A model generated the notes under the pieces. That model had not been told where the DNA came from. It saw nothing but the letters and a program-made list of their open reading frames with translations, and searched no databases. 64,000 bases of DNA from Eutreptiella sp. 'Long Island Sound 2002' (taxonomy: Eukaryota; Protista; Euglenida), in contig OZ038379.1 in the NCBI GenBank assembly GCA_964036045.1, positions 41,664,001 to 41,728,000 of the forward strand, given 5' to 3'. Positions 3,088 to 36,900 of this stretch are shown one piece after another. The position numbers were made by a program, and so were the translations under genes. How positions within the stretch are numbered: position 1 is the first letter of the stretch; the number at the start of each line of letters is the position of its first letter.

Positions 3088-5046
3088 GTGACGGTGCACA
3101 ACGGCCCATACAAGGGCAAACCGGCAAAGCTCTTGCCCCGCCACCTAGCGCAATCATATAGGCCAATGGACGTGCAATCGGCGCATTCAGGCACCCTCTG
3201 CGGCATCGCGTCCGAGCGCTTGGCCACCAACATGGAGATCCAAGGCGCGTACACGCCGCTCGTGTTCTCCTATCGCACAAGACACAACGCCCAGTTCCAG
3301 GTTTTGGTAGGGCCAGCGCCCATCTACCGCACCCTCCTAGAACACCGGCCGTGCGCCCCCGGCCATGTACTCACGTTGGCCCTCGGAGTAAACTGGTCCA
3401 CAGCGGTGCCACTCCAGCTGCCGGGCCGGCGGCATACCTACCCGCCACCATCTTGGTGTACAACAACGACCGCAGGTACGTACACCCCACCCTACAAGGC
3501 GTCGCGGCACAATCGGACGCATGCTGCGACGCGTCGCGACGGGCGGGACGCATCGTGCACCCGAAAAAGCTGGAGTTCTTCCACATGTGCCTCGTACGCC
3601 ACGGCATCTCGCAAGACCGGGCCCCGGTCCCCAATTTTGCGGACCTCACGTCCACCGACCCCCCCCGAACTGGTGGGCGTCCCGCTCCTGCCGGAACTTG
3701 CGTTGCACAAGGCCACCAACAAGGCCCTTCGGGCACTGAGGTCCGTGCACAAAGGCATAGCACGCGGCCCAGCTAGCCCCATTCTATGCCTAGGGACCGT
3801 ATACTCCTTTGGCCTCTCGGCCTTCAACTACTTGTCAGGCGGAGTCTTGGTCGGGGCAACGGATCTTCGAACCCACGAGCGCATAACCGACACCGTGCAC
3901 TTGACGGCCTACTATCTCCCCCCATGGACGCATAGGTCCCTACTGCGCCTTGACCTCGCTCCAGGCGGCTTCGGCTCCCCCGATCTGTCAGATCCCTGCT
4001 ATAGCCCCTCGTCACCTACCTCCGCGCCTCGTGGGGAACCAAACGGCTAGCGGTGTCAATGGCTTACCACTTCCCGTGACTCCAATAAAGGGGTGACCGG
4101 CAGCCCGAGGGCCACCGCATGAAGGACGCCCGTCAGCCGCTGCACGTTACACAGCATCTTTGCCTCACCGCGGCCATACGGGATGCCGCCCATTACACTG
4201 ACGGCAATCTCGACATTTTGCACGGTGATTCCTTCGTGATCGCCGCCACAGCTGGGAGCAAAGCCGCACACGAAGTTGGCGCCGGTCTCGTCCTCTGGCA
4301 CCCGGCTCACGGCGCCTTCTATGGCCATTGGTTCGGAGTCGAAGTTTGCGCTAGTGACTCCACAGACGCGAAATGGCTAGCCAAAATGATCTTGATGCTC
4401 GTGGTGGGGAACAGGCTGTGGTGGGGCACTGTCCACTTGGCCTCCGACTCCACGGCGTCCATGATGGCCAATGTCACCAAGTCCCTGCCAACGGCATCCC
4501 GCCTCTCCTTCCTGTTCTTAGTCGCCATCATCCAATTGCACACCCGACCCTCCGAAACCTGGCTCCCCGCCCAACCTGACATAGGCGCGGCCACCCTTCT
4601 CGCCGCCCTCAACGCCATCTCTGATGAGCTAGCGGATAGGGTTGCCCGATCCGCTGAGCCAAACACCCTGCCCTAGCTGCACCTCTGCCAAGGGCGGGCG
4701 CTGGCCGTGCACCAAGGGCACAGTTGCACCCGAGGAATGCTGCGACTGTGATAATTCCGCAGCACCAGGCCACTTTCTATGAGCAGCACTATGTCCCGCG
4801 CGACAGCTCCTGGTTCTCCATATCATCCTCCCTCAGCGACACCACAGAGTCCGCCACCATTTGAACACGCGCCATCCACGTCATCATGGCCCACTGCTTG
4901 CTCTACGTACAGTCACATTCTCCTAGCTATGGTGGTGTCGCCTAGCCTTACTGCCACCTACCCCCCAGCGACATCACCAATCACTTGATGCGTTGTTGCC
5001 CGCAGTTTTACCTCCAGCAAGTCTACTTGGCGTGGCACATGCTGCG
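3088..5046 (+). mobile_element. Degenerate non-LTR retrotransposon (LINE): RT, RNase H and C-terminal Cys/His knuckle
   Basis: Frameshifted ORFs give KGKPAK...SYRP (RT start), LVYNNDRRY (decayed YxDD), HPKKLEF and GGFGSPDL (thumb). ORF 4119-4676 has the RNase H pattern IAATAGSK / DSTDAKWLA / LASDSTA / WLPAQPD / LNAISDELA. YCHLPPSDITNHLMRCCP follows at ~4950-5000. Confidence 0.75.
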
Positions 5047-6064
5047 GAGGTATGTAGAGCAAGAAGAGGAGGCCACCCAACCAGAGGAAGAGGACGGTGA
5101 GTCCCAGAAACCCCCCCCCCCCCAAGTCAACCGGCAAGCACGGGGACGGCACACCCGCCAAGGCCAAAAAATCAAAGGCTAGAGCAAGCGCCTCACAGCA
5201 GAGCCCCAAGCCTGGAGCAAAGCCTCCACCCACGAAGGCGCTGGGCACGTTTGCAGCCCACTTCACACCGTCCCAGCAGACACAGAATGGACGTGGCGCC
5301 ACTGGTAGTGCTAACAGCGAGATGACTGGTGTCCGGGCACCACAAGCAAATGGTGGACACCTTACTGGTAACGGTGCCAAACCAAAGGCACCTGGCCTGA
5401 GGAAGCGGCGATAGAGTGACAGTGGTGTGTGCTTTGACTGCCGTGTTGTATGTTTTCCCTGTTACACGTCACAATGCCGTTTGGCGTTGTCTCTGCAAAT
5501 GCTATTGACGTTTTGCGCACTATTTTTTTTGTGTTTTACCAAAGCTGGAAGAAATTTCGCCCAGGTTCAGGTATTTCCCGGAATACAGGGTTCGTTTTTA
5601 CATTTTTGTAAAGCTGGAAGAAATTTCGCCCAAAGGTCTCATTAATGGCAAATAGAGACCTCGATTATCATGCATGAATTTGAGTGACTGTCAATCGACA
5701 GTTTTTGGGCACACACAGGGTGCATCAACCTTTGCCAAGTGTGTGCTACCCTATTTCTTGCACTGCATCGCCTCAGTGGATGATACATTTGTGTGTAACA
5801 CTGGAAAGGTTTGTTGTATTCTAGAAACCTTCTTTCTTCCTCTGCTTTTGCAGTATGCATGCATGCTTATTGTGTTTTGACAACTGGGGTGTGGTTACAT
5901 GAGAATGGCATTTTAGATAAATAGAGACACTCGTTGTTTCCTACTAGGTGCAAGGGGTCCCCTAGGTGCAGAATTCATACCCTGCTTTTTTTTGGGGGGG
6001 GTACAGTATGGCCCCGAGGAGCCCAGCCTGTGGGTAGTGGGGTGGGCAGTTAGCGTGGCCTAAG
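5047..6064 (+). mobile_element. Right-end fragment (~1 kb) of a family-C DNA transposon, interrupting the LINE
   Basis: Direct homolog of 43985-44960. It ends in the same terminus GTTAGCGTGGCCTAAG at 6064 and carries two family-C palindromes (5545, 5614). Confidence 0.85.
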
Positions 6065-6700: not shown

Positions 6701-8120
6701 CTTAGCACTACACAACCACTTGGGCGAGGGTGGACAAAATGGGGTTGGGGTGGTAACAAAGTACCCCAACTTTTTGGTACAATCTTCAATACGAAGAAGA
6801 GAGAGCATCAAAGGCGCGACCTCGGACTCCCCAAAAGATACCAGTCCAAACCCACCAAGACGGAGGGTCGGGTTGGTCCTTTTTTTCAGAATTTTGTGAC
6901 CAAGTCGCCCGACAGTGTTCCATACCCCTATGATGCTATTTTTGAGATGTTCCCCGGCCCGGTCATTGTCTGAGCGAGCACCTCCGTTGACCAGTTGCCC
7001 CACAGACGTGGCCACACACCCCACCATCCTCCCCCCCTCCGACCGTGCCACAGTGAGTGCCACCTCTCCACTTCTTTACGCCTCTCACCCGGCCACTTCT
7101 TGAATATTCAAGCGGGAACAACTCTCGCTGAGTCCTACATAGAGAGGTGGGACGAGGGCACCCTCACCCAAGGTGAAGTCCTCGTCTTAGTGAGCACCAC
7201 CCGTTCACGGCCGCACCATGTAGGGTGCACCTAATTCTCGCGACACAACCTCCCACAACGACTTGAGTTCTCGTGGCCTGTGTTCCTTGACTCGATATGG
7301 ACAAAGGCATTTGTCACCCTGTCTCTGCTACCATAGGGCATGACACTGGAAAGACGATGGTGAAAAGCATGAGCGGACAGTGCAAGCCATTCCCAAAATG
7401 TGCAACGTAAGGTCTCAGGGAATGCGCAGCACATCTTAAGCGCAACCGCACATTGAAGTGCAACAAAGCGAAATCAACCATGCAAATACACCCGAAAATA
7501 GTATGAAGATCACGTAGAATTCGCGAGCAGGGTCAATTAAGAAAGTTTGGCAAAAGTTGTGCATGAGCCCCAAGGTCACAATGGGTGGCTTACAAAGAGG
7601 TCATGAATGTACAAACCGCATAAGCAAAAGCGCGGTGAGGCCTTGGCTCACAGTGTTGTCTACCCAAGGCGACATAGGGGGAGAAGCCATCTCAAAGCAC
7701 AAGTTACATGCATCTTGGACGATTGTTTCCACCACCGCTCAGCCACCTAGGCACCAGAGAAGATGGGTGGTAGAGGCAAGCTTGGGGTGCACTATTCGCA
7801 AGGTTGCCGGGAGTGCTTTGCGCGCGCGACAGGTTTTTTCATGTTTTTCCTTGCACAATGGTCCGTGACCCCCTGTTTTGCATCCTTCCCCCGTTCTCTG
7901 GCACATTTTTACGGTTGAAGCGCCATAAAATGTTTGTCTCTGCAGGCGGAAACAACGCGGCAGCAGAATGAAGTACAAGACTTGAAACGGCTATGTTGTG
8001 TGTGTGTGTGGGTTGATGGCACAGGAAATGTACAAAGGTGGTGCAAGGCAGCAGGCACCTATGAATTGAAAGACTCAGAAGAAAAGGGTCAAAAGGGTCA
8101 AAACGGTCAATGGTTAGACA

Positions 8121-8465
8121 AGGAAGGGTGGGAACGTGCTGTTTTCCCGCATGTCGTTCGGAAGGATGAACGAGAAACCTCTCATGTCCCCAGTGTCCCA
8201 AAGTGATTTATTTGTCTTGGAATGCCCCACCGTTTCCTCGATGAATTTGCTGGTTGATGATTGTCACGTGACAGTCACTGCTGTGGATGGAAACTCCTCC
8301 TCAACTCCCCAGCAAGGATTCGCATGGGGAGTTGATCCAGGAGGCGGCAAAAAGTAGAAACGTGCGGGCAAACGTTTCTGCTGGGGGGAAACCAGCCCAC
8401 CCGCGCAGACCAACGACGTTAGGACAGACAAGCCCCACCTTAGGCGGCGGCTACACATGCATCCG
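8121..8465. repeat. Inverted homolog of 42288-42635 (transposase 5' region fragment)
   Basis: Alignable by eye to the reverse complement of 42288-42635, e.g. GATGAATTTGCTGGTTGATGATTGTCACGTGACA and GGGGAGTTGATCCAGGAGGCGG. Confidence 0.9.
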
Positions 8466-8969
8466 GTCCGGCCACGGCGCTTGCAGTGGTTGAGCGTGGG
8501 CTCTCACTGTAGGTGGTCGCGAAAGCACACCCCCCAGACCTCAAGCAATGCCTCAGGCTGTTTCTGAAGATGATCCACCCTTACTCTGCCCCGCCTGGCA
8601 GTTGGGTGAGTGGGGCATCGTGGTGTCGTGCGGCCACACCTTGGACAAAGGACAACAAAACTCAAGGGCTTTCATCAGGCCCACAACTTTAGGCGTAGGT
8701 GGGAAACTTGGGGACGGGGCAGCCACATTGTGCCGTGCACCAGATGGTTAGTTCGACATGGGTAGGATTCCTATTATATATGTCTTATTGGCACGGTAAG
8801 ACTTATAAGGTATGTTTTGTTTTTTCATGTTGGTTTGGTATAGGTCCCTTTTTCATGGGGCGTTTTTGATGTTCCGGAAACAAACTAGGGTTGGCGTTGG
8901 GTTGGAAACCCTGAGGGTCAACAATACCTAGCGGCTCTGGTTTCTTCCACCCAGAAACGTGTTCTTTTT

Positions 8970-11232
8970 TTACGGCTCCGGCGCCGTAAACTTAAGAACG
9001 CATTCCTTTTCTTCGCATGTCCAGGAAATCGGAGATGTCCGAAGCGTTTCGCTTCGCAGGCGGACGTACCACAGGCTGCTGTACAAATTCGGTGGTGGTT
9101 GGGGACCCGGTTTAGGTTTGGGTTTCGGCTTAGGAAGGCCATGTGCAGCCTTAGGCTTAGGCTTAGGCTCGGGCTTAGGCTTCGGCAAATTGTTCAGACG
9201 CTTTTCATCATTGCAAGCCAACAGTCTTTGAGACTGTATGGTTAAGGCTTCGATATTAGGTGAGGGTACAACACCAAAAACATCCTGCGCCTGTTGCACA
9301 GCCTCGGGAATGGTACTGCCATCTCTAACTTCAGTTGGAGCCGAGTAGGTTACGCATCAGCTGCACCGCCTGAACCTTTACTGTTAGGTCAGGAAGATGG
9401 ACCCATAGCCGGTCGGGAAAGGTGAACCCTGGTGGCCACGCAGTATACGACCTACCCTGAGACATGGGTTCGGAGGTTAACGGCATCTAGGGTAAAGTAG
9501 CAGCTAAAATATCGGTAATCAGCCGTGTGGTTCTATATTGTACACGGGCGGTAAAGCTACGTGCCAAGTGGGGCTCCGTTAGATCCCGGGGCTCATTAGG
9601 TTTCCGAGTAAGGTACCGGTAATGGTTTGCATATCCCCCAAATGTGATAATGGTTGGGGCCTCTTCTTTAGCTTGTTGAAGTTCACTCAGAGTGGACTCC
9701 AAATTTTCTTCACAGAAGGATGCACAAGGCAGAGCTTCCAGATATGGCTCCCACTGCAGCAAAGCCAATAGTGTAGCATCCAGGTATTGCTGGCGACCCT
9801 GAGTGTCTCTTGGGGCCATCAACATGACAGTTGTGAATTGCAACACCTCATGTGCATCAGCACGTGACGAGGCATCGTGTTGCCTCTAGTGAAGGGTACG
9901 CACCCTGTACCCGAGATAAAATAGTTGAGGCACATAGTCCCGAATCAGGTACAATAGAGCCTGTAAGCGCTCCTTTTTTACGGTGCTAGCGCCACAAATT
10001 GCCTGAGGCCCGTCAACAGAGGCCAGTGCACCTCGTATATGGGGTGTTACTCTTCCAGAGATTAGGAAAGCACTTAGTACCATCTGCTCCATCATTCCCA
10101 CATGGAAGTGGGTGCGAATGGTTACCGATGTAGGATTGTCCACGAAACCCGGGTGTTCAAGGGTTGTCCAGAACGTTAGAAACTTGCGGTAACACATAGT
10201 CAAACAATATTTATAGGCATACCACAATCCAAAAAGGAGCGGTGTGTTTTGCAAAAACGTACTTGTATACACAGCAACGTATGTTGTGCTGTGATGCAGT
10301 TTGTGTATTCTAAAGTACAGATCCACATCACATAGCACGGGACTGTACTAGTGGTTAGTTCTCTGGCGCCATTCTATTAGGTTACAGCATACTTGCAGTA
10401 GCCCCTGCCGGGCTGATACGTTGCATGGTAGGACATTGCCGTCCATCATGGAGCCATAGTCACTCCATGTCGGCGGATGTCCAGTTGCGTCCGCACCGAC
10501 TCATAGTTCAGGTGGTGTGACCTTAATGTGTCTATCCTTGACCGAAATAGTTGGCTGGCTTCTCTTAGTTTTTGAGGCAAGATTTGTGCAGCCCGTAGTA
10601 GATCGGGAATGGACAAAGCCCCTCTCCGTGGTGGGAACCCACCATCAGGTTGTGGCACAGGGAGGACTGCAACACATGTTGCGTTGATGGACATGTCCTT
10701 TACGACATACGTTCCGATTGTAGCGCCACTTGTTGTAGTTATCAATCCAAAGCACAGTACAATGCTTTGTGACCAAATCCACAATTGTACGTGCAAACTC
10801 CATGGCTGCCTGCGCAATATTTTGCTTGCGGGGTACCACAAGACCAGTACCAGCAACAACTGCAGCCTTCGATCGGCTTAGGTCCTCTAGCCGCCGGTCC
10901 ACCATGGTTGCTGCACAGGAGCTTTTCCCCAGTACACCAGTGCTCCATCTTTTCATGGACGTGAAACAGGTCCAAAGACTTTGGGCAAAACTTGTCACCC
11001 ATCGGCCACCACGTCTAGGCGGGTCTTCCACCAGGTTCGTCCACACCTTTTGACACCTTTTGTCCCGGCAGGTCAAACTGAGGAACCACAGCACAAACGT
11101 TCTGCACGGACCACACACCAGGGCGTCCTCAACAATGGCTTGCACAGAGGTATACCCTTTGAGGGAACACAGCCCCTGTATGTAGTCGCCCGGGAGGTAT
11201 AGGTCATCAACACCACTGTGAGTGGTACTGCA
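8970..11232 (-). pseudogene. Disrupted DDE-transposase-like gene of element A (Academ/DUF6589-like motif order)
   Basis: Consecutive minus-strand ORFs give VLWIDNY, VRTQLD, LCDVDLY, PLLFGLWYAYKY and FCEENLESTLSEL, then a PK-rich tail. Each block aligns with ORFs at 41077-42285. Superfamily assignment is by motif memory only. Confidence 0.65.
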
Positions 11233-11915
11233 AAGCTTCCTTCGCCGTTTCGCGGCCCCTCCCCGGGAAAATTTTACGGCTGAAGCGCCGTAAGTTTGAC
11301 CATAGTCTGTGTTTTGTCTGTCAGACCATCATGAGGCATTGATGTCCTCACTGGCGAGAATGTAAATGTGACACGGACACCTGTAGAAGTGTAGAATCGG
11401 TTACCATTAGACAATTGAAAAACCTCTTTTTCAGGTGGTATGCCATAACCCCAGTTACGGACATGAAATGTGTTTTAATCACATCTACAATACACACCTA
11501 CCTGGCAGTTACTGGCACTCAGACAGTTGGCGCCAAATACGATCTTGACTCACCAAAATGGAGCACAGACAATTGCGGCTTTGTTGGTGTCGCATTTCAG
11601 CTGTGTGCGTTCTTGCCAATTTTAGTTTGTTGCAGGTATGCGATATTTTGCAGGAAAATACCACCGTTCGTAGTTGTACTTTGTTCCCAGGACCTTGACC
11701 AAGGGGTCTGTTTACTGGCAGTGTGCCACTCTGTGTAGATGCGAATGTGGCCACGAGTGCTAGACAGGGGGCAAACCGCCATGCATTTCTGTTTCTTTCC
11801 CCGAATAGGGTGTGCACTGCAACCTGCCAGAAGGGGTTACAGAGGTGCTGCAACTTGGTACACCGAGAGTGAAATTGCACCCTCCACATTGTTGCAGACA
11901 CAAAACTAGCATAAG

Positions 11916-14900
11916 ATGGCACCCCGTGGTGGCAAACGGGCCCCGCCAGCAGCAGTAGGCGAACAACCTCGAAACGAAGACGACAGTAGTGCCGGTGACG
12001 GAAGGGCCTCATACTTGGGTACAACAATGTACACGGCGTCCCTTGACGGTCACACCGAACAGGAGTCCCCTTCTGGGCCCCTTGGTGACATACCGCATCT
12101 GGGCGGTGATCTACAGTCCAGTGGAGACGAACTGACGACGGAAATGTGGACGACTACGAACCCGAATATGTTGGGATACCCAAAGGCGAGGAGGACCAGG
12201 AGGCCTCGGAGGATGAGGAATACCAGGACGTAGACCTGAGGCGTGTGCTGCAACAGAGCAAGTCGCAACTGCGACAAACAGCACTGCCACGGTACGCCAT
12301 CCCTACCCAGGGGGAGGGGCAGCGAGTTCTGGAGACCAGTGCTCGACACACTAACACTACCGACAAGCAACTCAGAGATGTACAGCAAGCTTTTGGCTAC
12401 GACATCAGCCAGTACATTATAAGTACTGCAACAGACGTCAGTGTTGACGACATTGACTTTGATACCGAGAGGATGTTTGGGCAATGTCGTATACACGACG
12501 ACAGTTTAGTCGAGCGATACGTAGATGGATTTGGTTGAGCGATACGTAGATTGATTAGCTCAAAGCGATCCCTTGAGTGGCATAAGCATTGTGCTAAAGG
12601 ACTGTGCAGGTATTTTAGTTGTTTACTGCTACTATCGTTGTCGTATACGGCGTAAAATTTTTACCTGGCTTCAGCCGTAAAAATTTTACGCCTGAAGCGC
12701 CGTAAATTGTGTCCGTTTCAGTACAAACTCGGATCACATCACTGACTCTGTGTACCGGCTTACATACCTGGTCATAGGGAGCAAACCAATATGCATTGGT
12801 GGCCAACATAATACCAAGGCCTGCAAGACTCGACGCAACTACCTGGTGGACACTGGCGTACCCGTGCATCGCATATGCCGGCATCTCCAAGTTATGTCGG
12901 CCACCATTTTTGCCTCGGACACCCCCCTCCATATTCTGGAGGAGGCACGGCATATCGGAAAGCCGGACTGCCGACTTGGTGGATTTTCTCCTTAGGAGAA
13001 TTAGGAGGCAAAATGCCGGTGGGCTAGGCATACACCTGAGCCCAGATAAGTTATTTGCAACCATACTAGCGTCTGGGGTACGTTTGATGGACATTGGGAG
13101 TACTGAGGAACAGAAAACTAGGTCACCTCAACAACAGAAGGAGATGCTGGACAAACGGGTATGTTCCTAGTATCTTGTCAACGTCTTTCGTATACACGTA
13201 TTTATTTCTGCTTATCTATGTGCTCCATTTAGAGGGGTGACGCTATTAGGCGCTTTGCTGGTTTGGGTTACCGCGTCGTACGACGACACCTTTCGAAGGC
13301 GGTTTGGTCAATCAACGAACGTTTCGAGGCTCCCTATGAGCCAATCAAAGCAGCAACGTTCCGTGACTACAGCAGTGGCCTGGCCATCTCCGATGTACAG
13401 GCTTTAGTGCAGTGGCCGTCTGACCGGCCGTTGAGTGTTATAGTAAACAAGTTGAGCGAGTTTTTGCGGTTTCTGAAAACCAGACGCAACATTATTTGGA
13501 ATCTACGTCACCCCAAGAATACACTAGTGGCGCCAGAGAACAATATGTTCTTTCTAGTCCCCTTACTTCGTAGTACTAGTATACGCCATTCCGCCTTTTA
13601 GTTGTTGTACCGCTTACGGCGCTAGCGCCGTAAATTGTTACTTGTCTGCTCCTGCGCATCACAGAGTCCCTTGAGATGTGTACGAGGCTGGCGGAAGTGA
13701 TGGCCCAAAAGCACAGCGACAAGTGGCTGCCAAAAGGTGGCCTTGGCGGAAGGGCGTATGCGGAGCTGAGGGCACGCGGTGCAGGCTGGCCTGAGTGGAC
13801 GGCTCTTCTAAAGAGCCCAATCTGGACGGATGCATCCTGTGCGGAACTCTGTTCCAGGTTGCAGAATCCTTCTGGGAACGCGAGCGTGACGTCGGCCAAA
13901 GGGCCTACTGGTACTGGCGCCCTCGTTCGGGCGGAACCGGAATTTGGGGATTGGAAGAAAGCTATTGTGGCAGGACCCACTATTGGGTCGGTGGTTGGTG
14001 CTCGTGGTACGTAGTGCGTCTACGTGGAGGCGACTAAGGATGATATTCTCCACGGCCACGACATCATCCAAATCGCCAACTGATGTACACCAGTTATTGT
14101 ACAGGGCCGCGGCAACGTCGTCCAAGATCGGGTAGACCAAAATTGTACTGACGGTGCCTCGCAGGCTAACAATTTGTGGACTGTAAGTACTATTTACTTG
14201 GGGTCAGCTGAGGAACGGCGGTTGTTCCTCCCTGACCCAAAGCAGACAGGTCTTGCAGGTTCCCTGGTGATGGCCATTTTGAGCCCTAAGGCTATGGTCC
14301 TCCCTAGTTACATTGGGAGTTACATTAGGTTTACAGGCCACTGCCATGCCCTTCCCCATGTTGAAACTGGGCTTGAAGCCCGATCTTAATCAGGGGAATT
14401 TTCGCTGCCTGGCAGTGGCCTTGAACCCAGGGCGAAAAGATGGTATGCTTTTGACTGCCAGTTTGGCAGATGAGTTTCCCCGTTAGCAGATTTCTGTGGT
14501 CACCGAGCCATATAATTTGTCACTTTTTGACAAGGATCTGGCAACTGCCACATCCAAGTATTATGGGACCGTGTCAGCAGACCTGGCCCATGAGGTAACA
14601 CTTTTGTGCAAGGGCCAAGTTCTGGATGACCAGAACATTGCTGTTCTTAGTGTGGAGGAGAGGGCAGCGTAGCGTAGGCGTGTTGGCGAACTGGTCACCC
14701 AGCATAAGAGGGAGCAGAAGACAAAGGCCCAAAAGGAAAAGGCTGAGACCAAGAAGGCGGTAAAAACCGCCCTGCAGGAACAAAAAACAGAGAAGGCTGC
14801 CCAGAGCAGTGCGGCAGCCTTGGAGACAGCTGCAGTTGCAGACCCATCAGATGAAACAGGTATCCTGGGCAACAGTGCCCAAACTCCAACTAAAGCAGCA

Positions 14901-15140
14901 GCAGCTAGGCAGGATGCAGCTGATATTGTCGCTGCAAAGGCAGGTACCCCTGCCAAGGCAGGGACCAGTACGGGGAGCGGTACCGCCTCCCCAAGCAGCA
15001 AGAAGAGGCCAGCCAGGGCCCCAGGGCTTCGGTCTAAGAGGCCTAAGCTTCCAGCAACTGCCGAGCCGGCTGCACATGGGGATAGGGCTGAGGTTCTTGG
15101 TACCACTGAGTTGGAGGCCCTCTTTGTCGGGCTGCCGTAG
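11916..15140 (+). pseudogene. Multi-exon gene with ParB/Srx (DGQHR-like) motifs, divergent from the transposase of element A
   Basis: DVSVDDIDFDTERMFGQCR (12146-12538), ICIGGQHNTKA and SDTPLHI (12750-12995), RRFAGLGYRVV (~13245-13275). All align with the element C gene at 39366-40301. The 3' boundary is uncertain. Confidence 0.55.
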
Positions 15141-18100
15141 TGTACATTACGGTGATACATTACATTGACTACACTACGGTGATTGTGTTCATACTCCATT
15201 ACCAGCAGTTGTGCGTTATGCTTATCCTCCGTTTTTGGGAGCGATCAAACTGTATGAACACATGGGGTGCACAGATTTAACTATTTTTCTACCTATTGCT
15301 TGACCGTTTCTTCTTGGTGTGTTCCATTTTGTACGGCTCAAGCGCCGTAGATTTTTTAGGGCGCTTCAGCCGTAAACAGCATGCGTCAATGACATGGAAG
15401 ATGAAACAGTTCCGTTGGCATTCCATTACAGAATTTGGTGAAATTTCATAATTTTTCCACAGTGAGATGCTACGTGGATTGCATACATCAGAAAGTGGTG
15501 CAGGATAAATAGGTAATAGCTTCATAATTAGCAGCTGGCGTGACATGTTTTTTCACTCCCTGCTAATACACGTGAAATGGAAAGGTGACTCTTTTTCACA
15601 CAAAGTGGTATGTGCTAGTTGGATACCGCAAGCCACGTGCAAGCACGGGGATCTGCACATCAATGCTCAGCAAGGATCTTTGTCACCCCCCTTTTCTGTA
15701 GAATTTTTGTTGTATTTTGTGTTGCATTGTGACATAACTTGGGGCACGTTTGTTTTAGGGTACATTTTTTTACGGCTCCGGAGCCGGAAATTTTCGCAAA
15801 CAAGGGAATATGCTGCAAACCCCCATGTTTTCACGATGGGCCCGCGTTTTCGTACGTTTTTGGGTAATTTACGGCGCCTGCATTTTGGGGGGGACTGCCG
15901 GCAACCTTGCGAATAGTGCACCCCAAGGCAAGGCCCCTGGGGCGGAAACCATGCGGGGGTTGACCCTTTGGACCTTGCGGGGCTGGCCCGGCCACCCCTT
16001 GGAGTGTCGGAACCTGCCACACCCCTCATGACCCTCCAGTTGCCTTTGAGACACCCCAGCAGACAACGTCGTCGCCGTCTCCCTCTACAAGCTCCAACCC
16101 CAACACCCTAGAGTGCAAGCGTGTCTCCCTGTTGCACATCAGTCTCCACACGTGGTCGTGCTGCCCTTGCACAAGCACCCCCTGGCCCCGGTGACCCCGA
16201 GCACCCCCCACTCACCAACTCAGGTGCACCAGCTGACCTCGAGGCAGAGAGGCAAAAAAGCCCGGGCGACGGAGACACATCCCGCCAACACCATTGACAC
16301 GTTGACCCACCTCCCCACTCCAAGTTAAGCTGGCGAGCACCTCGGCGACCCTCCACTTGCACCGAGTACCAAGCATAGGCAACTCACCACCATGAGGCCT
16401 CAGGACACACGCACACTGCACAAAGAAAGCTACGCCCAATCTAGCCCTACACCAGCGCACCAAGGCTGCAGGGCACCACCCCCAGCCGACACAAACAAGG
16501 CGAGCAAGAAGACATGACTCAAGGGCACCAACTCACCCGGCACCGGAACTGTGCCCTCCATCGCACATGCATGTCACCGGGGAACGCCTGCCATTGACGC
16601 CCAAAAGGGACACCTACGCCCTGATAAGAAAGTTACGCGAAAAAAACGGCGAGTGGGACCACACGCACCACATTGCCTAAGGCACTACAATCAGGTGGAG
16701 ACCACTCATCCCGGCAACATGGCCGCCATGAAGAAAGCGTTGGGACGTGGGACACACCAAATACCATATCTCTGATTGGAAAATAGGGGACGGGGAACGA
16801 GGGGAGCACAGAAGCCACCCCACCAAACCGTGCCCCACCCACGCACAATCAGAAGTAGACACCCCGCCGCACGATCCAAGGCGGTCTGCACCACGGGTCC
16901 CCGAACCACAAGCCATAACAGCCCAGCGGCGGACAGATCACCGACAAGATAACTTGCAGGCCAACAAGGACCACATCACGGAGTTTAGAGGCCCACCTAC
17001 AACCCGCACCCCATGCACTACGCCTGCAATCTAACCCCTCCCGGGACCCCATGGGGACGGCCCACGGGGGCACCGAGTGTACATACTTGAGAAGAAAACA
17101 TTTTGAAGGATACCAAGGTGTCAGCTCAAAGACAATGGAAATGACCTTCGCGCCTTGCCAACCGCCTTCATTCAAGGGAGGGACGGTTTGATAAATGGTA
17201 CCCGTGTATCCCTAATGACATTTGACCTTGCTGCTGGATAATGAATGTTTTAAAATTTGTCCCACCTCCAGTCTGGTCATTGGGTGAGGGACCTTGAATC
17301 CTCCAAATGCACCCCCTATCACCAACTACCTACCCATCTATGAAATTGTTTGCCAATTTGTGTGAAGATTACAATTCAGTTCACTAGACAGTCTTTCAGA
17401 CTTGGTCAACTGGTTTTTGATGTGAGTAGCTCCTTGCAAGAGCCGGATGCTCTCTACATTGTCAATTGGCAAGGTGACTAAAATAGCTTGCTGGAGGTAC
17501 TTTTGTTCAAGACAGTGGGGTCCTATGTAGGGTACAAACATCACATGGTAACATGGAAGAGGAACATGACCCCCCAGAGAAAAGCTTGTGCAGTGTTGAC
17601 AAGCTGCCATCAAGGAAGAGGAAGCACCACATAAAACATTGGGATTTTGAGTCCGACGAGGACTTGACAAAACCCCGTAGTGTGGGTAAGCTCTTCAAAC
17701 ACCTTGGTCACTTGGATGATTTTCAGCTAAAACCAAGGCCACAAAGAAAAAGTAGCCGCCGTTCCATCGTTCCATTCCATTGCTCTGTGCCCCAAAATAG
17801 GCGAACCAATACAGCCCCACCACACAAAATGCAGGTGGTCAAAATATGATCATGCACATGATAATAATCGGTGGAGGGTTTTAGCCTTCTCCATCAGTGA
17901 GCATCTTAGAACACTTTGTAGAGTGTTCATTTCCTGCATTTCCCACATTTAGCGACCATAGTTGGCTTGTTGACACCTGTGTCGTGTATGCACCTTTTAA
18001 CGTGTAATCTTCACCAGGCCCCCTTGTCTAATGGGTGCTGTCCTACAGCTGAGCATGAACTGATTCTTTCGACAGCTTTGAGAGAGTGGCGTTAGTCTCC

Positions 18101-28613: not shown

Positions 28614-31274
28614 GTCCACAATGACATTGACAGGTGGTTGGAGAAGTACCGTAGGCGGCAAGAACAGGGTCAAATGGGTGGGTGATCGCACATCAAGAAG
28701 GAGCCTGGCACAAAGCAAAGCACCTACCTGACGCAACCATTTGAGCCACGGGAGTGCATTCCGCCAGATCAAGCAGAGCGGGTAGAGCGGGCACCGGTGC
28801 CGAAGCGTCCGGGTGTAGCGGCCAGGGCTGTGGAGTCTGTGTGAAGCATGGAGTGCACAATAGCCCCATTCGTGGTTCTCAGGATGCCTTGGATGCAACT
28901 GCCTTGGTTTCTCAATTGGCACCTGAGCTGAAGGATGTGCCGCGGTCAACAATGTGAGACATTGTACCGGATGTTGTTGAGAAAGCCATGGCCTGGGGCA
29001 GCAAGACGCGGGCAGAGCAGGCCTTGGAACAAGTAAACAAGAAGGAGCGGGGAGCAAGGGAGATCGTCCTGCAGCAGAAGGCAACTATTATTGGAGTGCG
29101 AGCACAAGTGGTTGAATTGCGAGAGCGGTTGAAGGCTATAGAGGAAGAGGGCAAGCCAGCAGTTGCAAACAAGGTGAGGTCAGAGGCTCTTTTGCAAGAG
29201 AAGTCTTCAGAGTGTGACGAGGTATTGAGCATCCTCAACCGGACGTATGGCCCGGCTAGTAGCCCCGCCAAATAAGCAGCATCACCACCATTGGAGATGA
29301 GGCGTCGTAATGCCGGGGGACACTTGAAAAGCGAGCTGTGTCCCGTTGGTTGTAGTGCAGGTGTGTTGTGACCAGGCCACTCCCCAGAGTAGCACGCATT
29401 TTGCATGTACATATTCGGCAATGCGCCGCGGTTCGCAAAAGGACAAGTTTCTTTGGTTTTGACGCTAGTGCTTCCGGGTATCGCCGTGCACAGGGTGCGA
29501 AAGGTGGGGTCACGAGTGGGTGGCTCCACGTTGCCTACCCCTTGCGGACACCACCGTGATTTGCATCCTACGCGCTGGCATGCATTCATGATGGGGGTCA
29601 CTATGTTGCAAGAATCCAAAATTTCGTGTGATTGTTGTGGCTGATAACTATTATCTTTGTGACGTAAGTCAAGTGGACGGGAGGGGTGGAAACATTTAAC
29701 ATTGGTGCCCCTTTACAACAGAAGTCGAGGATCCTAATGATGGGTTTTGCACAGAGCATCCCACAGCCTCTTCAAATGCCCCGCCGTTCGGTACCCCATA
29801 CCTAGAAGCCATCCACAGCCCTTCAAATGAACATGGTGTGTTGCGACCAGTATGAAACACTCAGGTCGCAATCATGCCATGTGCATTAGCCCCCTGGTAT
29901 GTAATGTGCTGTTTTTTAAGGTGCGTTTGTGAACTATTGTATCCCACATGCATTTCGAACAAATGGCTTACTAGGTGTAAACTTCGGGAGGTAGGGTTCC
30001 CCCAAAAGCATGCCACATTCATTGACTCGCTTCAAAAACATGTCATTTACGCATTTCGTGCACCACTCGGTACCCTCCTCCCCAGTTTGCTTGAAACAAC
30101 TCCCCCCCCCCACCCCCCCCACCCTTTTTTTTCTAAGAATTGGCACACTGGCCTTTCTCTGACACTTGTCGACACTTCTGCCCGTGGATTAGGCCAATTA
30201 AATTTTCCCCAAACCATGTGCCATGGCGCATTGTTTTGGGAAGCACTGCATAATAGTGTGTAGTGTGTCCAGCGGCGGCCATAAGAATGCACCCTGCACA
30301 TTCTTTTGGAAAATCTTGCCACCAATTGTCTACGTAGACGATTCCCCAATGGTGCACCACATCTTACTCCCGTGCTAACCATTCGGTGCCCTGTTGTGCG
30401 GGTATTCGGCGGCGAAGTGTAACGTGATGCAACATGATAGTCTCTTGAGTTTCATTTCAACCTATGAGGTTTTGCTCATTTCTCTGTGCAAAGCAAATGA
30501 AGTATCAGTAACCCACAACTACATGCAAGCAAGCAAGGCATACACGGGGGCACGAGTAGTGAGAGTACCTACGAATGGTATTGTTGTTGCATGGTGTACA
30601 AATACACATAGTGACTACATGGTGTCTTACACCCCTCGTTGAGGAAAGAGCCACATCTCATCTTTTTGGCGATTTTTTACCAGTGGTGGCACCAAAGAAT
30701 GCGCCATGGCTCAACCATTTTGTTTCTCCGTTTGAACAAGGGTCTTAGTATGTATTCAGTTTTGTTGTTTGGGTGTTCTCCGGGGCATTGTAGTTTGATG
30801 CCAAAATTCAGGAGAGTCCTTTTTCTTTGTTGCCAGAATGAGATTTGGCACATTACCTTCCGCAAGCCCCTTGGTGAACAGGAAGTACACACCCCATAGC
30901 CAAAAGGGCAGGGTAGGGATGTTCAATCTAGGGGGCTAGCGGGCTGGGGAAGGGCAATCTAGGGTAGGGCAGACTAGGGCTTGGCAAGGTAGGGCATGGC
31001 TGGTCTAGGTATGGCAAAGCAGGGCAATAAGGTTCAAGCACACAGAAACGAGTAAGGCATGCCCTTGGTACACGCTAGAAGACCCAATCTCGTTCTAGCC
31101 TAGAACACTCTAGCCTACATGTTCTAGCCTAGATTAGATCAATACTAGAACGATATAATGTCTACCCAGATGTGCCAATTTCTTCATTGTTACGCCGTGC
31201 ATGCTTGCTATTGTCCGTAGTGCATTGTTCCATGGTTCCTTCTTTCCCACTTAGATATTACACATTTCTTTGCA

Positions 31275-32870
31275 ATGAAACGCCCCGCCGCTTCCCCCTT
31301 TGCTCCCTCCTCAACCGGGAAGGACACTTCCCTCTTGTCTAAGGCACTACGGGAGTTGAGTGGGGCATCTAACCTCAAGGATGAGCGGGTGGGCCATTAT
31401 TTGGCCACGTGGGCGCTATCATGCCCCCTAGCACGGCGGCAATTCAACAATACCGTCCAATATGTCAACTCCGCCACTTCTAGCCATACCACGGGTGAGG
31501 CATGCAAGGCCGCCGTTGAGGCATACGCCGCCTCCTTTCTCCCCACCACCCGCCATGTGTGAACTAGTGCTCAACATGAGGGCACCCAAGTCCTCGTGGA
31601 GGACCCCCTTGGAGCTCTACACCCTCCGTAAGTTGGAGTATCACCGCACCGTCCCTAGTGGCCCCTACTCCCGTCCAATTTGTACCGAGCGGGCTTTCCC
31701 AGCCCGTTGGAAGGAGTTGGTCGCCCAGGTGCAATTGAATGACCCCGTTGCCACGGTGTTGCCCAAGGCCACCGGGATCTCATGGCCCTTCGCCTCATGG
31801 GTCACATACATCCTCTCCTGGCCGGGCTTGGTGCGGTCAATCAACCGCACCTTCCCGTTGACGTTCATCGTCCGGGGAGATGCCTACCCCGTGGCCGGGG
31901 GCAATTGGACCCAACTCACCATCTCCTTGGCCAACTTCGAGCGCTTGGCCCGTTGCGCGGCGGGCCTCTGGGTGTTGAGCATGGCCAATTGCGATGACAA
32001 GGCCATGGACACCCTTGGGACGTTGTGGAAGAGCAATTGGGAGGTACTCCTCTCACCTAGTGCCTTTTGCCTGTTCTAGTTTTGATCTAGTTGGCCTCGA
32101 ACACCGTTCGCTAGACGCTAGATTGGACTAGACTAGAACGAAATTAACCACCCCCCATGTCTCGTGTTTAGGTGATTCAAGATATCATCGACACGGGGCT
32201 GGTCCAATGCGGGGCCTCCACGGAGGAGGCGAAGGTGATCCTCGGGGGGGATCAACCGTGGACGCAAAGGGTGATCGGGGTGTCCACATGCCCCCAAGTG
32301 GGCTCCATGTTCAATGAGCGGATATGGAATGCCCAAGCGAAGACTTGGGAGGGTAGTGCTATCCCGCGGACCATGGAGGGTGATGACGCCAACTACACGG
32401 CTTTCCTCCTTGGGACGCCTTCCTTGCAAGCCGCCGGCTGCAGTACACATCGCATTTTGAAATTGCCACGTGCCTGGGTCGTCTTGTGCATTTTGCACTT
32501 GACAATGGCCATGGGCCGCTTGTTGGGGGAGTTTGTCGACTGGGAGGCTAGGTCGGTCACCCCTGCGCTCCGTCAAGACCTGCAAGTTATCCTGTCGGAG
32601 AGGCGTGCACGTTGGAGCGTTTATGGGTTGGCTTCCCCTGGACGGGGAAGAGACGGCCAATTCTTTTGACGCATGGCCGGATATTGCTAAGTGCCTCGGC
32701 ATTAGGCCGAGCACGGCCAAGTACAAGGCCATCGCGCACATGTGGGACCTGCTGCAGGCCCTCTATTGTACATATCAGGGCCCTAACCCATTGAATTGTG
32801 CTGCCCTGGGCCGCGATTTCCGGCACTACTGTACTGTCCAATCTGGACCTCTCGGTGTTGGAGGGTTTGG
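31275..32870 (+). pseudogene. Spliced Transib/RAG1-like DDE transposase (one intron, frameshifts near 31550 and 32640)
   Basis: FIVRGDAYP, ILGGDQPWTQRVIGV, VLCILHLTMAMGRLL and (D)GEETAN occur in the order of the RAG1/Transib D...D...LH motifs. ORF 31462 joins ORF 32172 in frame across a GT-AG intron (WE|VIQ). Confidence 0.58.
32044..32171 (+). other. 128-nt GT-AG intron with internal CTAG-rich inverted repeat
   Basis: GAG|GTACTCC...TGTTTAG|GTG, phase 0, restores the reading frame. Arms GTTCTAGT (32073) and ACTAGAAC (32132). A homolog lies at 38935-39029. Confidence 0.75.
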
Positions 32871-33194
32871 GTAGGTGGGGAGCGGGGAGGAGTGCGGGCG
32901 GCATGGACCCGCAGCGCAAGGGTTGGGTGAGGGTGCAGGACCGGGCGGGGGAGACCAGCAGCAACAGCAACAGCAGCACCAGCGGGGGGAGGACACCCCC
33001 CCCCCAAGGCCCCCAAACCCCCCCCCAAGCCCCCCAAGAAAAAAACGCCGCCACTTCGAGAGTAGCGACGAAGACCCCCCCCCCCCAAGCCAAGCAGAGC
33101 AAGCCCAAGGCCAAGGCCAAGCCCAAGCCCAAGGCCAAGCCCTAGGCCAAGGCCAAGGGTAAAGCCCCCCCCCCCAAAACCCCAAGGCCGCCCC

Positions 33195-33698
33195 TTGCAA
33201 GATAGGGGCCGGGACCCCTATGGGAATGTGCCGGGTTTTGGGGACACCCGGTATGTCCCTTGGAGGGAGGGGGGCAATGGGGGGACCGTCAGCCAAGTGA
33301 CGGTGTTGGGGGATTGGGATGAGGAGTTGGACCCGGGGGAGTGGTGGGTGGTGTCGCAGGGGTCCAATGGGGAGGGGGTGGGGGGGAAGAAGGGGAAGAA
33401 GGGGAAGAAGAGGAAGCAGGAGAAAGAGGGGGGCACCTTCCGGGTGCCGGGAGAGCTTCCCTTCCGCACCCGGGAGGAGGCGGAGGCCCACCTCCGGGAG
33501 GCCTTGGGGGCCGGGGACGAGGGGGACGACGGGGATCACGAGGGGGAGGAGGGTGGTGACAAGGGGGAGGGGGGTGACAAGGGGGGTGAGGTGGGGGGTG
33601 ACGAGGGGGGTGAGAAGGAAGGGGACACAGGGGGTAGGAAGGGGGGTGCCGGGAGCAAGGATGAGCCCCGGCAACCCCCCACCACGCAGGAAGGGTAA
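33195..33698 (+). CDS. Acidic/Gly-rich ORF of element B, unknown function
   Basis: RGRDPYGNVPGFGDTRYVP...W is homologous to RGKDPYGEIPYGGESRRVP...W at ~58930-59080, so the peptide is conserved between two copies. Confidence 0.4.
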   Translation: MQDRGRDPYGNVPGFGDTRYVPWREGGNGGTVSQVTVLGDWDEELDPGEWWVVSQGSNGEGVGGKKGKKGKKRKQEKEGGTFRVPGELPFRTREEAEAHLREALGAGDEGDDGDHEGEEGGDKGEGGDKGGEVGGDEGGEKEGDTGGRKGGAGSKDEPRQPPTTQEG

Positions 33699-33877
33699 CC
33701 TGCGTGTCGCGACTCGCGAATGGGGGCCTTCGGGGGCAAGGGGGCTAATCGGGCTAACCGGGCTAATCGGGCTAACCCACCACCAAGTGACACGGTGCCG
33801 GCCCGCCAAGAGACCTTCCAAGTGACCTATGGGGTGCGGTGGGGGGCTAACCGGGCTAACCGGGGGGTGGGGGGGGA

Positions 33878-33958
33878 GGAACCCGGCGCTCCGTGAGTCG
33901 GGTGCAGCATGGGTACCCTCTGATTGGCCACGGCTGGCCATGGTAGCCGGGGCAGCTT
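33878..33958. promoter_or_regulatory. Dispersed ~80-bp promoter-like module, copy 3 (inside element B)
   Basis: Homolog of 892-972, preceded by GGGCTAA(T/C)C 9-mers (33741-33778, 33844-33862). Confidence 0.45.
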
Positions 33959-36900
33959 CTCTTTGAGGAGTGGCGGAGCATCTATATATATTTTTCTAGC
34001 GGCGTTCTAGCGAACCGTTCTAGCGACGCTCGCTAGAACGTCGCTAGACCGCCGCTAGAACGAAAATTTTTGGACTCCAAAATCAGGTGAAAACAATGAA
34101 ATTGTGAAAAGTAAAAAGTATGGGCCCACGAGTATGGATAGGGTGGTCCAGGTTCGACACCTCATCCCCCCCCTCCTGCGGGGGGGGGGGGGGCATCCCC
34201 CTCTTTTTTCCTTCTAGCCGCTCTAGCCAGTTCTAGGCTAGAACGAGATTAGGTATTCTAGCGTGTGCCAAGGGTGGTAGCGCAAAGCTAGCAGAGCACC
34301 ACAAGACATGGGAGAGTAGAGCAGAGAAGGGCAATGTAGGGCGGAGTAGGGCAAGGCATGGCCGAGTAGGGAATGGCAGGACAGTGCTTGAGGGCCAAGC
34401 ACATACACAAACCCAAAACGCACCATTGCGTCGAAGCTTCCAAAACTCTCCGTGTCCAAGAAGACCATCCGCCTTTTGAAGAGGGCATTGAGGAACACCA
34501 CCGACATGACATCCCTATACATGCATACGTGCTACGGCGGGGTTGAAAAGTGCCATGTTGTCCAAAGTAGGATCCATGGTTCATTGTTTCGGCGGTATTC
34601 ACAAATACCGCGTTGTCTTTCTTGATTCGCCGAAAGAAACGAGCCATGGCTCCTTGTTTCATATCAATCTGCAAACAACACGTTTTGTTTCTGGGTTTGG
34701 CCCAAATAATCTGCCTTGGCTCGTTCTTACGGCACAACTTCTTGTGGATTAGCCACATGTAGCCTCGTTGGTAGGTCTAAGAGTGCGATTACGCCGTTTA
34801 ATGTCTGCATGGCCACCAAGGCTCAGTACGTTCTCTGATATGTGGGTGTGTTTGTGCTCTTCACAGTACGTTAATTCTAGGTTCGGCCACACGAATGGGC
34901 CATGGATCAATCATGTTCCCGCTTTCAGCTTTCCAACGATTGTGTACATCATGCCACCGCACTATGGTTTTGGTTTACAATCATGTAGTGTTGCTGCGGT
35001 GTTTGGCCTGCATGTAATGATCTGCCACTATCAAAAATATGAGTGCCCACATCGTTAAAATGAAAACAGAAAAGGAAATAATCACGGTACAGGGATTCAG
35101 ACCTGCTGAAAAAATATTTTCTCTTTGCACAACCATGCATTTGTGAGGCATCAAGGGGAACGGGTATATCAACCTCGAGCGAGGGGGGTACAAGTGAGTT
35201 TACAAATGTTTACAAGTTTACAAGTGAGTTTAGTTTGGAGGGGGAGGCCGGGGGGGGGGGCAAAAAAAAGCATGTCCCCGAAAGTTTGCTTTCCAAGATT
35301 ACTCTCTTTTTATGCAGTGTGACCAAAACAAAGAAAAGGTGGTGTAAATTCACGAAATCTTTTGTCGCGGAATGGGAAACCAAGGTCAATCAGAAAGTTG
35401 CACATCAAAGATTTTGGACAGCATGCACCCATTGTATGCATTTTTAGCGTTTTTTTTGTCTTTACTTTTGTAGTGCCCTTTTGACATAGATGACATCACA
35501 AAAGAAATCAATGTTGTTATTGTTTTTCGATGGTGATGTATGCTATCTCAACAATATGTCACCAACACGTGCATTCATGGTATACATACATAAGAGCAGC
35601 TTCTGTCCGGCATGTACAATAGGTGGTCTACACAACATAAGCGGGCGTGCATTGCAGCAGGGCTATCTAAGTGGGGTAGGAGCAGCGGAGCAACACACCA
35701 AGGAGCCATCCACGTATCCCCAGGCATAGGCACACACGTTGCAGCTGGCAGCATGGAGAAAGATGTGGGGTACACAAGGTCTTCAAGGCCGTTAGCGTGG
35801 GAGGACACCAGATGGGGCAACACGCCTTGGCCTAAAGGGAGGGCTATTTTTCGGGGATGTGCAACATGTACAGTTGCCACTGTGCTCTGCTTGGGCACCG
35901 GAAGCGCCTTGGGCCTTGCAACCTTTTGAGACCAAACATCGCATAAGCCAAGTTGCTTTGGGTGTAGTACACGTGCCACCATGGGGGATAAAGATGCCAC
36001 CACTCGGCTGCACCATGTGAGCGCCGAGATGTGGGTTGGGGAGGGCTCTACACCACATAGGCCCAGAACCAATGAAAGGCACCGTTTGTGGGATTGTGGC
36101 CTACCAACATCGCGAGCTCCAATCCAAGGTGGCACGGTCCGTGGCTTATGAGGGGTGGCTGGCAACGACGTGTCGTTGGCCAATTTTTTTATTTACGCAG
36201 GGACATGCTTTCCTGAGGGCTATTTCTCATATACCATGTGTGAGCGGATTGTCTTTGTGCCCAAGGCTACAAAGTTGGTCTCACAGCGCGCACCACGTTG
36301 GAATGATAGGCAAATCGACAATAATCTCAATGGGCAATTTGTAGAGGTGGTTGAGGCAAGGCTGTGTTGGCCGCCCAGCAAACCCGATGTCAACCATATG
36401 CAAGTGGTTCCGTACATAGCCCAGGGCGTATCATAGCGTTTAAACTTGTAGGCTTATCCCAAGTTACTAGTTCTGCCGTGTGCGTATGGCACACGTAGTG
36501 CATTGTGAAGGCTGTGCTGCAACACGCGCGCTCCCAACCCTCGGTGGCTTTCCCTACATAAGCAATGTATGGTGTCTATAGTAGAGTGCAGGGTGGAGGG
36601 AACAGCGTGGTGAGGCTTGAACAATGGGCGAAAGTACCCCGGGCCTCCAGGAGCTGGGAAAAACTATCCACGTCTCCTGTGCTCGCATGGTAGAGGCCTG
36701 AACCCTGTATGCCTACTCTCAACCCGCTTCACGTTACCTCCGTGATGACATGTTCAATTATGCAGCCACTAGGTGCACAAATAACTCACCCCAAGTTCGG
36801 CATACCGCCAATATTTCACCATTTTATGCACCTCTTCGCTGTCTATTGTCTGTTTTGCCCAATGACTTAGCTGGTCTCTCTACAATGCTCTGATTGTATT

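Follow-up and report, generated by a model that had tools for sequence, protein, structure and literature searches.

hAT elements normally generate target-site duplications (TSDs) of 8 bp and usually have termini of the CAG or TAG type, and P elements combine an 8-bp TSD with a transposase insertion domain that binds GTP. The TSD is 8 bp in Novosib, TTAA in Kolobok, 6-7 bp in Dada, 4 bp in Sola3 and 3 bp in Zator. TSDs of 5 bp are a feature of the hAT5 group of hAT, lengths of 7-8, 2-3 and 7 bp are given for KDZ, Plavaka and Kyakuja, respectively, and Transib belongs to the CACTA-Mirage-Chapaev-Transib (CMCT) clade, which has 5'-CA..TG-3' termini and TSDs of 2-5 bp (PMC12730594). AcademX elements have a 3-4 bp TSD and an XPG nuclease, AcademH elements have a 9-10 bp TSD and a helicase, and a C/DxxH motif between the second catalytic aspartate (Asp) and the catalytic glutamate (Glu) is common to Dada, Kolobok and hAT (PMC10045372). 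As of 2017, there was no Pfam model for Academ, Novosib, Kolobok, Dada, Sola or Zator (PMC5751038). Here, we describe two elements, A (7781-15927) and C (37877-44960), in a 64,000-nt stretch of DNA from Eutreptiella sp. 'Long Island Sound 2002' (contig OZ038379.1, positions 41,664,001 to 41,728,000; hereafter the window, in whose numbering unlabelled coordinates are given). Taken together, the data make it probable that A and C are decayed copies from two distant families within one group of eukaryotic cut-and-paste DNA transposons.

Element A is bounded by a 34-nt terminal inverted repeat (TIR) that opens CTTGGGGTGCACTATTCGC, with arms that are 97% complementary, and element C by a 26-nt TIR that opens CTTAGGCCACGCTAAC, with arms that are 92% complementary. 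In 100 shuffles of the window, the match count observed for the TIR sequence was never reached for either element. As claimed in a sequence-only reading of the window that preceded this analysis, both elements start CTTRGG and both are flanked by exact 5-bp direct repeats, GCAAG for A and GTTCT for C. The features of element A are as follows.

7776-7780, no strand: left TSD, GCAAG, identical to 15928-15932
7781-7814, plus strand: left TIR, 34 nt, starting CTTGGGGTGCAC, 97% complementary to 15894-15927
9264-11260, minus strand: decayed transposase gene
12110-15200, plus strand: remnant of an accessory gene, read as intron-containing, divergent from the transposase gene and conserved across families
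15894-15927, minus strand: right TIR, pairing with 7781-7814
15928-15932, no strand: right TSD, GCAAG, directly outside the right TIR
8969-15790, no strand: span of eight family-specific palindromes of about 22 bp, TTTACGGCGC..GCGCCGTAAA, starting at 8969, 9977, 11273, 12685, 13613, 15330, 15355 and 15769

All of the transposase motifs of element A are on the minus strand: WIDN, which holds the first catalytic Asp, at 10738-10749; the second catalytic Asp within CDVD, at about 10327-10329; PLLFGLWYAYKY at 10207-10242; and EENLESTLSEL, the Glu motif, at 9679-9711. Where other members of the family have GxWH, element A has GLWY (as GLWYAYKY, within 10207-10242), with tyrosine in place of the conserved histidine (His). 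The gene contains at least three frame changes and an in-frame TAG at 9886-9888, a change private to A, where three other copies (L001, L002 and L005) read TGG. Because TGG stands at this position in three of the copies inspected and a stop, TAG or TGA, in the other two, the stops are ordinary nonsense mutations; a variant genetic code, considered as an explanation for the recurrent in-frame stop, was rejected on the same grounds. The accessory remnant retains pieces resembling ParB and sulfiredoxin (Srx) at 12299-12535, with a DxDxxxGQxR motif, and at 12778-13167. With its frameshifts and stop, element A is a dead copy that is unable to move by itself.

Element C is more extensively rearranged, as is apparent from comparison with L006, an un-rearranged C-type copy. 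Its features are as follows.

37872-37876, no strand: left TSD, GTTCT, the same as 44961-44965
37877-37902, plus strand: left TIR, 26 nt, starting CTTAGGCCACGC, 92% complementary to 44935-44960
38442-39029, plus strand: N-terminal part of the transposase, up to the first catalytic Asp, cut by an A-type fragment
39030-39364, plus strand: A-type left end inside element C, 90% identical to A 7781-8116
39365-42285, minus strand: portion of an inverted segment, identified by comparison with L006
42286-42634, minus strand: second piece of the A-type fragment, 85% identical to A 8124-8467
42593-44357, plus strand: C-terminal part of the accessory gene, poorly conserved, with a 467-aa open frame at 42957-44357
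44935-44960, minus strand: right TIR, pairing with 37877-37902
44961-44965, no strand: right TSD, GTTCT, directly outside the right TIR
38083-44646, no strand: span of nine family-specific 20-bp palindromes, CTGGGCGAAATTTCGCCCAG, starting at 38083, 38152, 38221, 38332, 40480, 40550, 42937, 44490 and 44627

The whole of 39365-42634 (3.3 kb) is inverted relative to L006, the A-type piece at 42286-42634 marking the second inversion breakpoint. Within the inverted part lie the stretch of the transposase that spans the second Asp and the Glu motif (41976-41080), the C-terminal part of the transposase (41076-40605), and the ParB-like domain of the accessory gene (40532-39447). As read, WFDN is on the plus strand (38880-38891), and FLID (41962-41973), PLLYGVWHPYKY (41842-41877) and EEYGEAMLSRL (41311-41343) lie on the opposite, minus strand; with the segment turned back, the motifs follow one another as Asp1, Asp2, GxWH, Glu. 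The sequence-only reading had described homologous open reading frames (ORFs) in A and C, with shared motifs in the same order. All of the motifs it quoted are present, and the proteins are homologous, although only distantly so, with 24% identity across 104 aa (E=8e-9); the common order holds once the inversion is undone, and not for the sequence as it stands. The elements that it delimited were thus borne out, and the rearrangement of C and the decay of both copies had escaped it. Element C holds, in two pieces, the first 687 bp of an A-type element, of which no right end remains. The fragment and the inversion may record a transposition event that was aberrant or intramolecular, or else a later rearrangement. 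Carrying both, element C is a dead copy that is unable to move by itself.

The 5-bp duplication recurs in further copies. Searches with one ORF piece of element A found five related ORFs, and searches with one piece of element C found 113; eight 20-kb loci were retrieved, all on megabase-sized contigs from the long-read assembly ERZ25074135 of the European Nucleotide Archive (ENA). L003 is a full copy, 89% identical to element A, with TTGAA on each flank. An 8.7-kb relative (L002) has CTTAC on each flank, and an 11.9-kb A-type relative (L004) has TCAAA on each flank. The flanks of L006, TGGAA and TGAAA, match at four of five positions, and those of L007, an internally deleted C-type copy, do not match. 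Counting A and C, there are five perfect 5-bp duplications and one 4/5 match. The 5-bp TSD is real, because five perfect matches, each with a probability of about 1/1024, are not attributable to chance; shifting the element boundaries gave no consistent duplication of any other length. A de novo scan for inverted repeats of the form CTTRG...CYAAG recovered the same set of elements, together with a third element of the window, B. Ends of this form bound eight complete transposase-bearing elements (A, C, L002, L004, L006, L009, L010 and L015), as well as the deleted derivative L007 and element B; the right end of L003 is CCAGG, unlike CYAAG. L009, L010 and L015, which come from three other metagenomes, have CTTGG termini.

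Element B (31064-34272) has a 52-nt inverted repeat starting (CC)CTTGGTACACGC, its own palindromes (GTTCTAG-C-CTAGAAC), and a GC-rich interior of low complexity, in which 32041-32139 matches the C-type transposase near the first Asp (38932-39030) at 83%. It sits within a 15-bp minisatellite (30934-31018 and 34311-34380), with flanks ATGCC and GGTGG that show no duplication. Three of the retrieved loci contain further features. In L002, 18692-19764 is a 1.07-kb stretch between CTTGGCCCTAGCGTC inverted repeats (18/20), without a matching 5-bp flank, that may be a non-autonomous relative. In L004, each of the three forward frames of 13255-15196 is open, for 630-645 aa; this 1.9-kb stretch, which is probably a stop-free tandem repeat rather than a gene, accounts for the extra length of the L004 element. 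In L005, 14703-15107 on the minus strand aligns with the C-type accessory ORF at 31% identity across 140 aa and lies outside the A-type element of that locus, which suggests that another related element is nearby.

The transposase gene is intronless. In L004, L006 and L007, the open frame is unbroken from the first catalytic Asp beyond the second; given these continuous frames and those of the metagenome homologues, introns in the transposase gene were considered and rejected. Window and locus translations were aligned to give a 418-position profile (A3), which was searched against 1.84 billion representative proteins. This search found 948 protein clusters (at 50% identity) with E<=1e-3, of which 593 had E<=1e-10. 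Many of the family proteins are intact, with lengths of 650-840 aa, and the profile spans roughly residues 145-580. Conserved across the family, in the numbering of the member P0126, are W145-x-D147-N148, R228-V-P-L-D232-x-x-R235, D283, G316-x-W318-H319-x-Y321-K, E363, and E485-E486-x-x-E489-A490. All 20 of the family proteins sampled for origin derive from ENA, Logan or Joint Genome Institute (JGI) metagenome contigs, none of the 20 is annotated as more than a "hypothetical protein", and metagenome proteins were all that an additional word-based search returned.

Searches of annotated resources with the transposase were negative. Pfam recognised no domain in the ORF pieces, in ten full-length family members or in the large ORFs of the window, and among 41 family members scanned at E<=1, no family recurred. 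In particular, those 41 members gave no hAT dimerisation domain, no other hAT, P, MULE or RAG1 match, and no match to Transposase_21, Plavaka, KDZ, THAP or Tnp_P_element. DUF6589 (PF20231) was matched by none of 20 ORF pieces (E<=0.1), six longer pieces (E<=10), ten full-length homologues or the 41 members (E<=1). Sequence searches of the Protein Data Bank (PDB) with two family profiles, A3 and A5, gave only chance matches and no Hermes, P-element or RAG1 chain. A back-translated PxLxGVWHxYK pattern, representing one motif only, had three chance matches in 185,579 prokaryotic species genomes, with no extended similarity. The group occurs widely in environmental eukaryote assemblies and is missing from the annotated resources queried.

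Structure prediction places the transposase in a known structural class. P0126 was modelled by AlphaFold2 with a 92-sequence alignment, giving a mean predicted local distance difference test (pLDDT) score of 88 and a predicted template-modelling (pTM) score of 0.83. In the model, D147 is on core strand 1 (142-151) and D283 follows strand 4 (280-282); W318-H319 begin the helix that follows strand 5; residues from roughly 333 to 483 are all-helical; and E485, E486 and E489 are at the start of a helix at 486-501. The motifs therefore run in the order WxDN (strand 1), PLLxDxN (after strand 4), GxWH (after strand 5), helical insertion, EExxEAxLS helix. On this model, the transposase is predicted to have an RNase H-like DDE core with an inserted helical domain, an architecture shared with the hAT, P-element, Transib/RAG1 and Mutator/IS256 enzymes, and the GxWH motif appears to correspond to the C/DxxH place of other superfamilies. 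Foldseek searches of the PDB ranked the P-element transposase (6p5a; probability 0.97) and Hermes (0.84-0.94) first, followed by RAG1 (6dbr; 0.51) and the IS256-family ISCth4 transposase (0.41). The Hermes match, the top hit, had E=6e-3 and template-modelling (TM) scores of 0.21-0.34; the P-element match, which scored equally well, had TM-scores of up to 0.35 on the target. Among viral models, a Pandoravirus hAT-family protein was on top (probability 0.41). The elements are thus predicted to be cut-and-paste transposons whose DDE enzyme falls into a hAT/P-like structural class. Between core strands 2 and 3 (P0126 176-242) lies an unusual insertion, about 65 residues long, which includes a long helix; it bears the nearly invariant RVPLDxxR, whose D232 is a third conserved Asp.

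Besides the transposase gene, every family has a further conserved stretch of coding sequence, about 3 kb long. This accessory gene is upstream of and divergent from the transposase gene in A-type elements, L009, L010 and L014, whereas in C-type elements and L015 it follows the transposase gene, downstream and in the same orientation. In every element it is split into separate open frames, even beside an intact transposase gene, and several A-type copies are interrupted at one common position between its two motif blocks. These breaks are read as introns, which argues for a eukaryotic host; a search for the dinoflagellate spliced leader was negative. The conserved part of the protein contains D-x-D-x-x-x-G-Q-x-R followed, about 45-50 residues on, by G-G-Q-H. 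The one contiguous version of this domain (L009:3864-4433, minus strand) was modelled with a pLDDT of 79, exceeding 90 for most of the first 120 residues. The top 47 Foldseek matches to the model all have the ParB fold (ParB, Noc, KorB, Srx, SbnI, PadC and relatives), with probabilities of 0.94-1.00 and a top E-value of 2e-5, and the conserved GGQH loop resembles the Gly-x-x-His/Arg loop of the ParB N-terminal fold. The domain is accordingly modelled as a ParB/sulfiredoxin fold. A PDB sequence search with a further profile (A7) gave chance matches only. The remainder of the protein is poorly conserved and contains no detectable domain; a methylase or oxygenase was sought there and not found, and no accessory ORF had a Pfam match to an XPG nuclease or a helicase.

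Palindromic parS sites are the targets of ParB proteins, and each family of elements described here has its own palindrome of about 20 bp, present in many copies and confined to its own elements. The A-type palindrome occurs at the eight sites in element A and at one site in the A-type fragment within C, and nowhere in the window outside A-type DNA. The C-type palindrome occurs at the nine sites in element C and at two in a partial C-type copy (5046-6064). Palindromes in four other elements are as follows.

L009: palindrome TTTCGTAACTGTTACGAAA
L010: palindrome CAACGGGATCGATCCCGTTG
L014: palindrome TCTATCGAAATCGATAGA
L015: palindrome CACGCGGACNTCCGCGTG

The palindromes cluster near the element ends, between the two genes, and in the accessory-gene breaks that are read as introns. 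In algal transposons, ParB-like accessory proteins have been proposed to bind inverted-repeat arrays of their own element (PMC12477816; bioRxiv 10.1101/2025.02.11.637652). By analogy, the same idea would fit here, with the palindromes bound by the ParB-like protein; the helical N-terminal domain of the transposase is an equally valid candidate for the binding partner. The algal elements, Sola1-1_Ec32 of Ectocarpus and the Plavaka element PAG3 of Bostrychia, likewise encode an accessory protein, about 1000 aa long and ParB-like in its N-terminal domain, whose gene in some cases lies on the opposite strand to that of the transposase. They differ from the elements described here in that a DNA methylase or 2-oxoglutarate oxygenase, neither of which is detectable here, is joined to the ParB domain, and in that they belong to Sola1 (AACCG ends, 4-bp TSD) or Plavaka (2-3 bp TSD).

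An intact element is about 6-8 kb long, has short TIRs beginning 5'-CTTRG, and carries an intronless gene for a DDE transposase of 650-840 aa and a gene of about 3 kb, read as intron-containing, for a protein whose conserved domain has a ParB/sulfiredoxin fold. In the model that these observations suggest, the transposase would cut the element out at its CTTRG ends, and the excised element would be joined to target strands staggered by 5 bp, repair of which would generate the duplication. The ParB-like protein or the N-terminal domain of the transposase may bind the family palindromes, and would thereby mark or assemble the element ends.

While the shared anatomy, proteins and TSD are consistent with one group of cut-and-paste transposons, several points weigh against that interpretation. 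Transposition activity is at most putative for every copy, and no empty site was found. No TSD is present at L007 or element B, both of which are in long-read data, or at L009, L010 and L015, which are on short metagenome contigs; the flanks of the latter three, two of whose contigs have names in the style of short-read assemblers, may be chimeric and are taken, by assumption, to be unreliable rather than contrary evidence. The E-values (6e-3 to 3e-1) and TM-scores (0.2-0.35) of the transposase in Foldseek are weak and low, respectively, leaving the nearest superfamily unsettled; for this reason, only a structural class is claimed, and not membership of hAT. The ParB-like domain is unrecognised by Pfam, and its assignment derives from a model built with 23 sequences. 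That either protein binds the palindromes is something we infer. Finally, the group is set apart from Academ, Novosib, Kolobok, Dada, Sola3 and Zator by general features such as TSD length rather than by sequence.

As far as the literature consulted goes, the group is probably a lineage that has no name. That it is an undescribed lineage is plausible, if somewhat short of an even chance, because sequence searches tie the transposase family to no Pfam model, solved structure or named protein. This part of the sequence-only reading is a plausible one, given the CTTRG..CYAAG ends, the 5-bp TSD and the lack of a catalogued match; the Academ label attached to it is unsupported. A fuller formulation, which we advance tentatively, is that of an unnamed, superfamily-level eukaryotic DDE lineage, so far seen only in uncultured eukaryotes, that combines CTTRG ends and a 5-bp TSD with a hAT/P-like GxWH transposase and a ParB-like partner that would recognise parS-like palindromes. 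KDZ and Plavaka are distinguished by TSDs of 7-8 and 2-3 bp and by the lack of any match here to their transposase models, both of which Pfam includes. In curated Ectocarpus families, Sola1 and Sola2 have termini AACCG and GGCGG and a 4-bp TSD, unlike the CTTRG ends and 5-bp TSD described here, and no WxDN or GxWH motif was found in context among curated Ectocarpus transposable element proteins, Sola included, in what is a weak, motif-only test.

The alternative that survives best, though we consider it unlikely, is a divergent branch of a named superfamily that either has no Pfam model or lies beyond the reach of its model. The likeliest such branch is a far relative of hAT (compare hAT5), and failing that, Novosib, Kolobok or Dada. 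hAT transposases give the best structural matches in both the PDB and viral searches, the predicted RNase H-like core, in which a large all-helical insertion precedes the Glu helix, is hAT-like, and so is the layout of short TIRs with many subterminal repeats. On the other hand, the elements described here have GxWH rather than CxxH, CTTRG ends rather than the usual CAG or TAG, and a ParB-like second gene. They also lack any hAT, P, MULE or RAG1 Pfam match at E<=1, and the two family profiles retrieve no Hermes, P-element or RAG1 chain by sequence. TSDs of TTAA for Kolobok, 8 bp for Novosib and 6-7 bp for Dada differ from the 5 bp found here. P elements share a DDE core with an insertion domain and have the highest Foldseek probability, and are unlike these elements in their 8-bp TSD and in the THAP and Tnp_P_element models, neither of which is matched here. 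The 5-bp TSD fits only the hAT5 subgroup of hAT (PMC12730594), a group that was overlooked when the sequence-only reading chose Transib/RAG as its comparison for this length. His319 is at the place expected for the C/DxxH histidine (PMC10045372), and the fact that several named superfamilies had no Pfam model in 2017 (PMC5751038) also favours a place within one of them.

An Academ-type (DUF6589-like) lineage with unusual ends and TSD length, as the sequence-only reading had proposed, is improbable. Academ elements are two-gene DDE transposons, and the motif order attributed to them, WxDN, D, GxxH, E, is conserved throughout the family described here. Academ proteins are, however, larger than the 650-840 aa transposases of this family. 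DUF6589 is unmatched in every set scanned, the predicted fold is closest to hAT and P, and the structural comparison suggested with that reading returned a confident model of hAT/P-like fold, albeit with weak E-values and TM-scores. If DUF6589 is not Academ, the negative Pfam scan is not decisive, since Academ had no Pfam model in 2017 (PMC5751038). The label "Academ-like" is unsupported because there is no DUF6589 match, the TSD is 5 bp, not the 3-4 or 9-10 bp of Academ, and a ParB-like protein takes the place of the XPG nuclease or helicase as partner. Least probable of all, to the point of being hardly tenable, is a relative of Transib/RAG or of the wider CMCT clade, which shares the 5-bp TSD, two genes per element, and a broad structural class in which RAG1 is among the fold matches (6dbr, probability 0.51), but which has 5'-CA..TG-3' termini (PMC12730594) rather than CTTRG, is outscored by Hermes and the P element, and finds no RAG1, Transposase_21 or Plavaka Pfam match here.

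Repbase listed 23 superfamilies of eukaryotic DNA transposons in 2022 (PMC10045372), and one more, if the proposal of a new lineage is true, would enlarge the classification of transposable elements appreciably. Repeat annotation would benefit too in protist and algal genomes, where many repeats stay "unknown". With 948 clusters the family is large, yet the sources checked were all environmental assemblies, so current libraries probably miss it. Together, the palindromes and the ParB-like partner would provide a testable case of a eukaryotic transposon with a bacterial-style ParB/parS recognition module, alongside what has lately been described in brown and red algae. The transposases that are intact, being intronless, about 700 aa long and matched with defined ends, are also candidates for new genetic tools.

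Other pieces of C-type DNA are present in the window. The partial copy at 5046-6064 is a truncated right end without a left end; it matches 43984-44960 at 86-92% identity and contains a small inversion, 5585-5730 corresponding to 44675-44529. A 93-bp C-type terminus at 53940-54032, 96% identical to 37877-37969 and reversed, adjoins a 3.9-kb array of a 71-bp satellite (54065-57925) on one side and an inverted satellite-like stretch (53636-53939) on the other. Derivation of the satellite from the A-type TIR was considered, one 71-bp monomer scoring about 27 (19 matches, 2 mismatches and 1 gap, counted by hand), and was rejected: the best of 300 shuffles also scored 27, which makes the match not significant, and the consensus unit gave nothing at >=24. 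A separate tandem array at 1100-2267, made up of 135/269-bp units with 85-94% matches, is unrelated to the elements.

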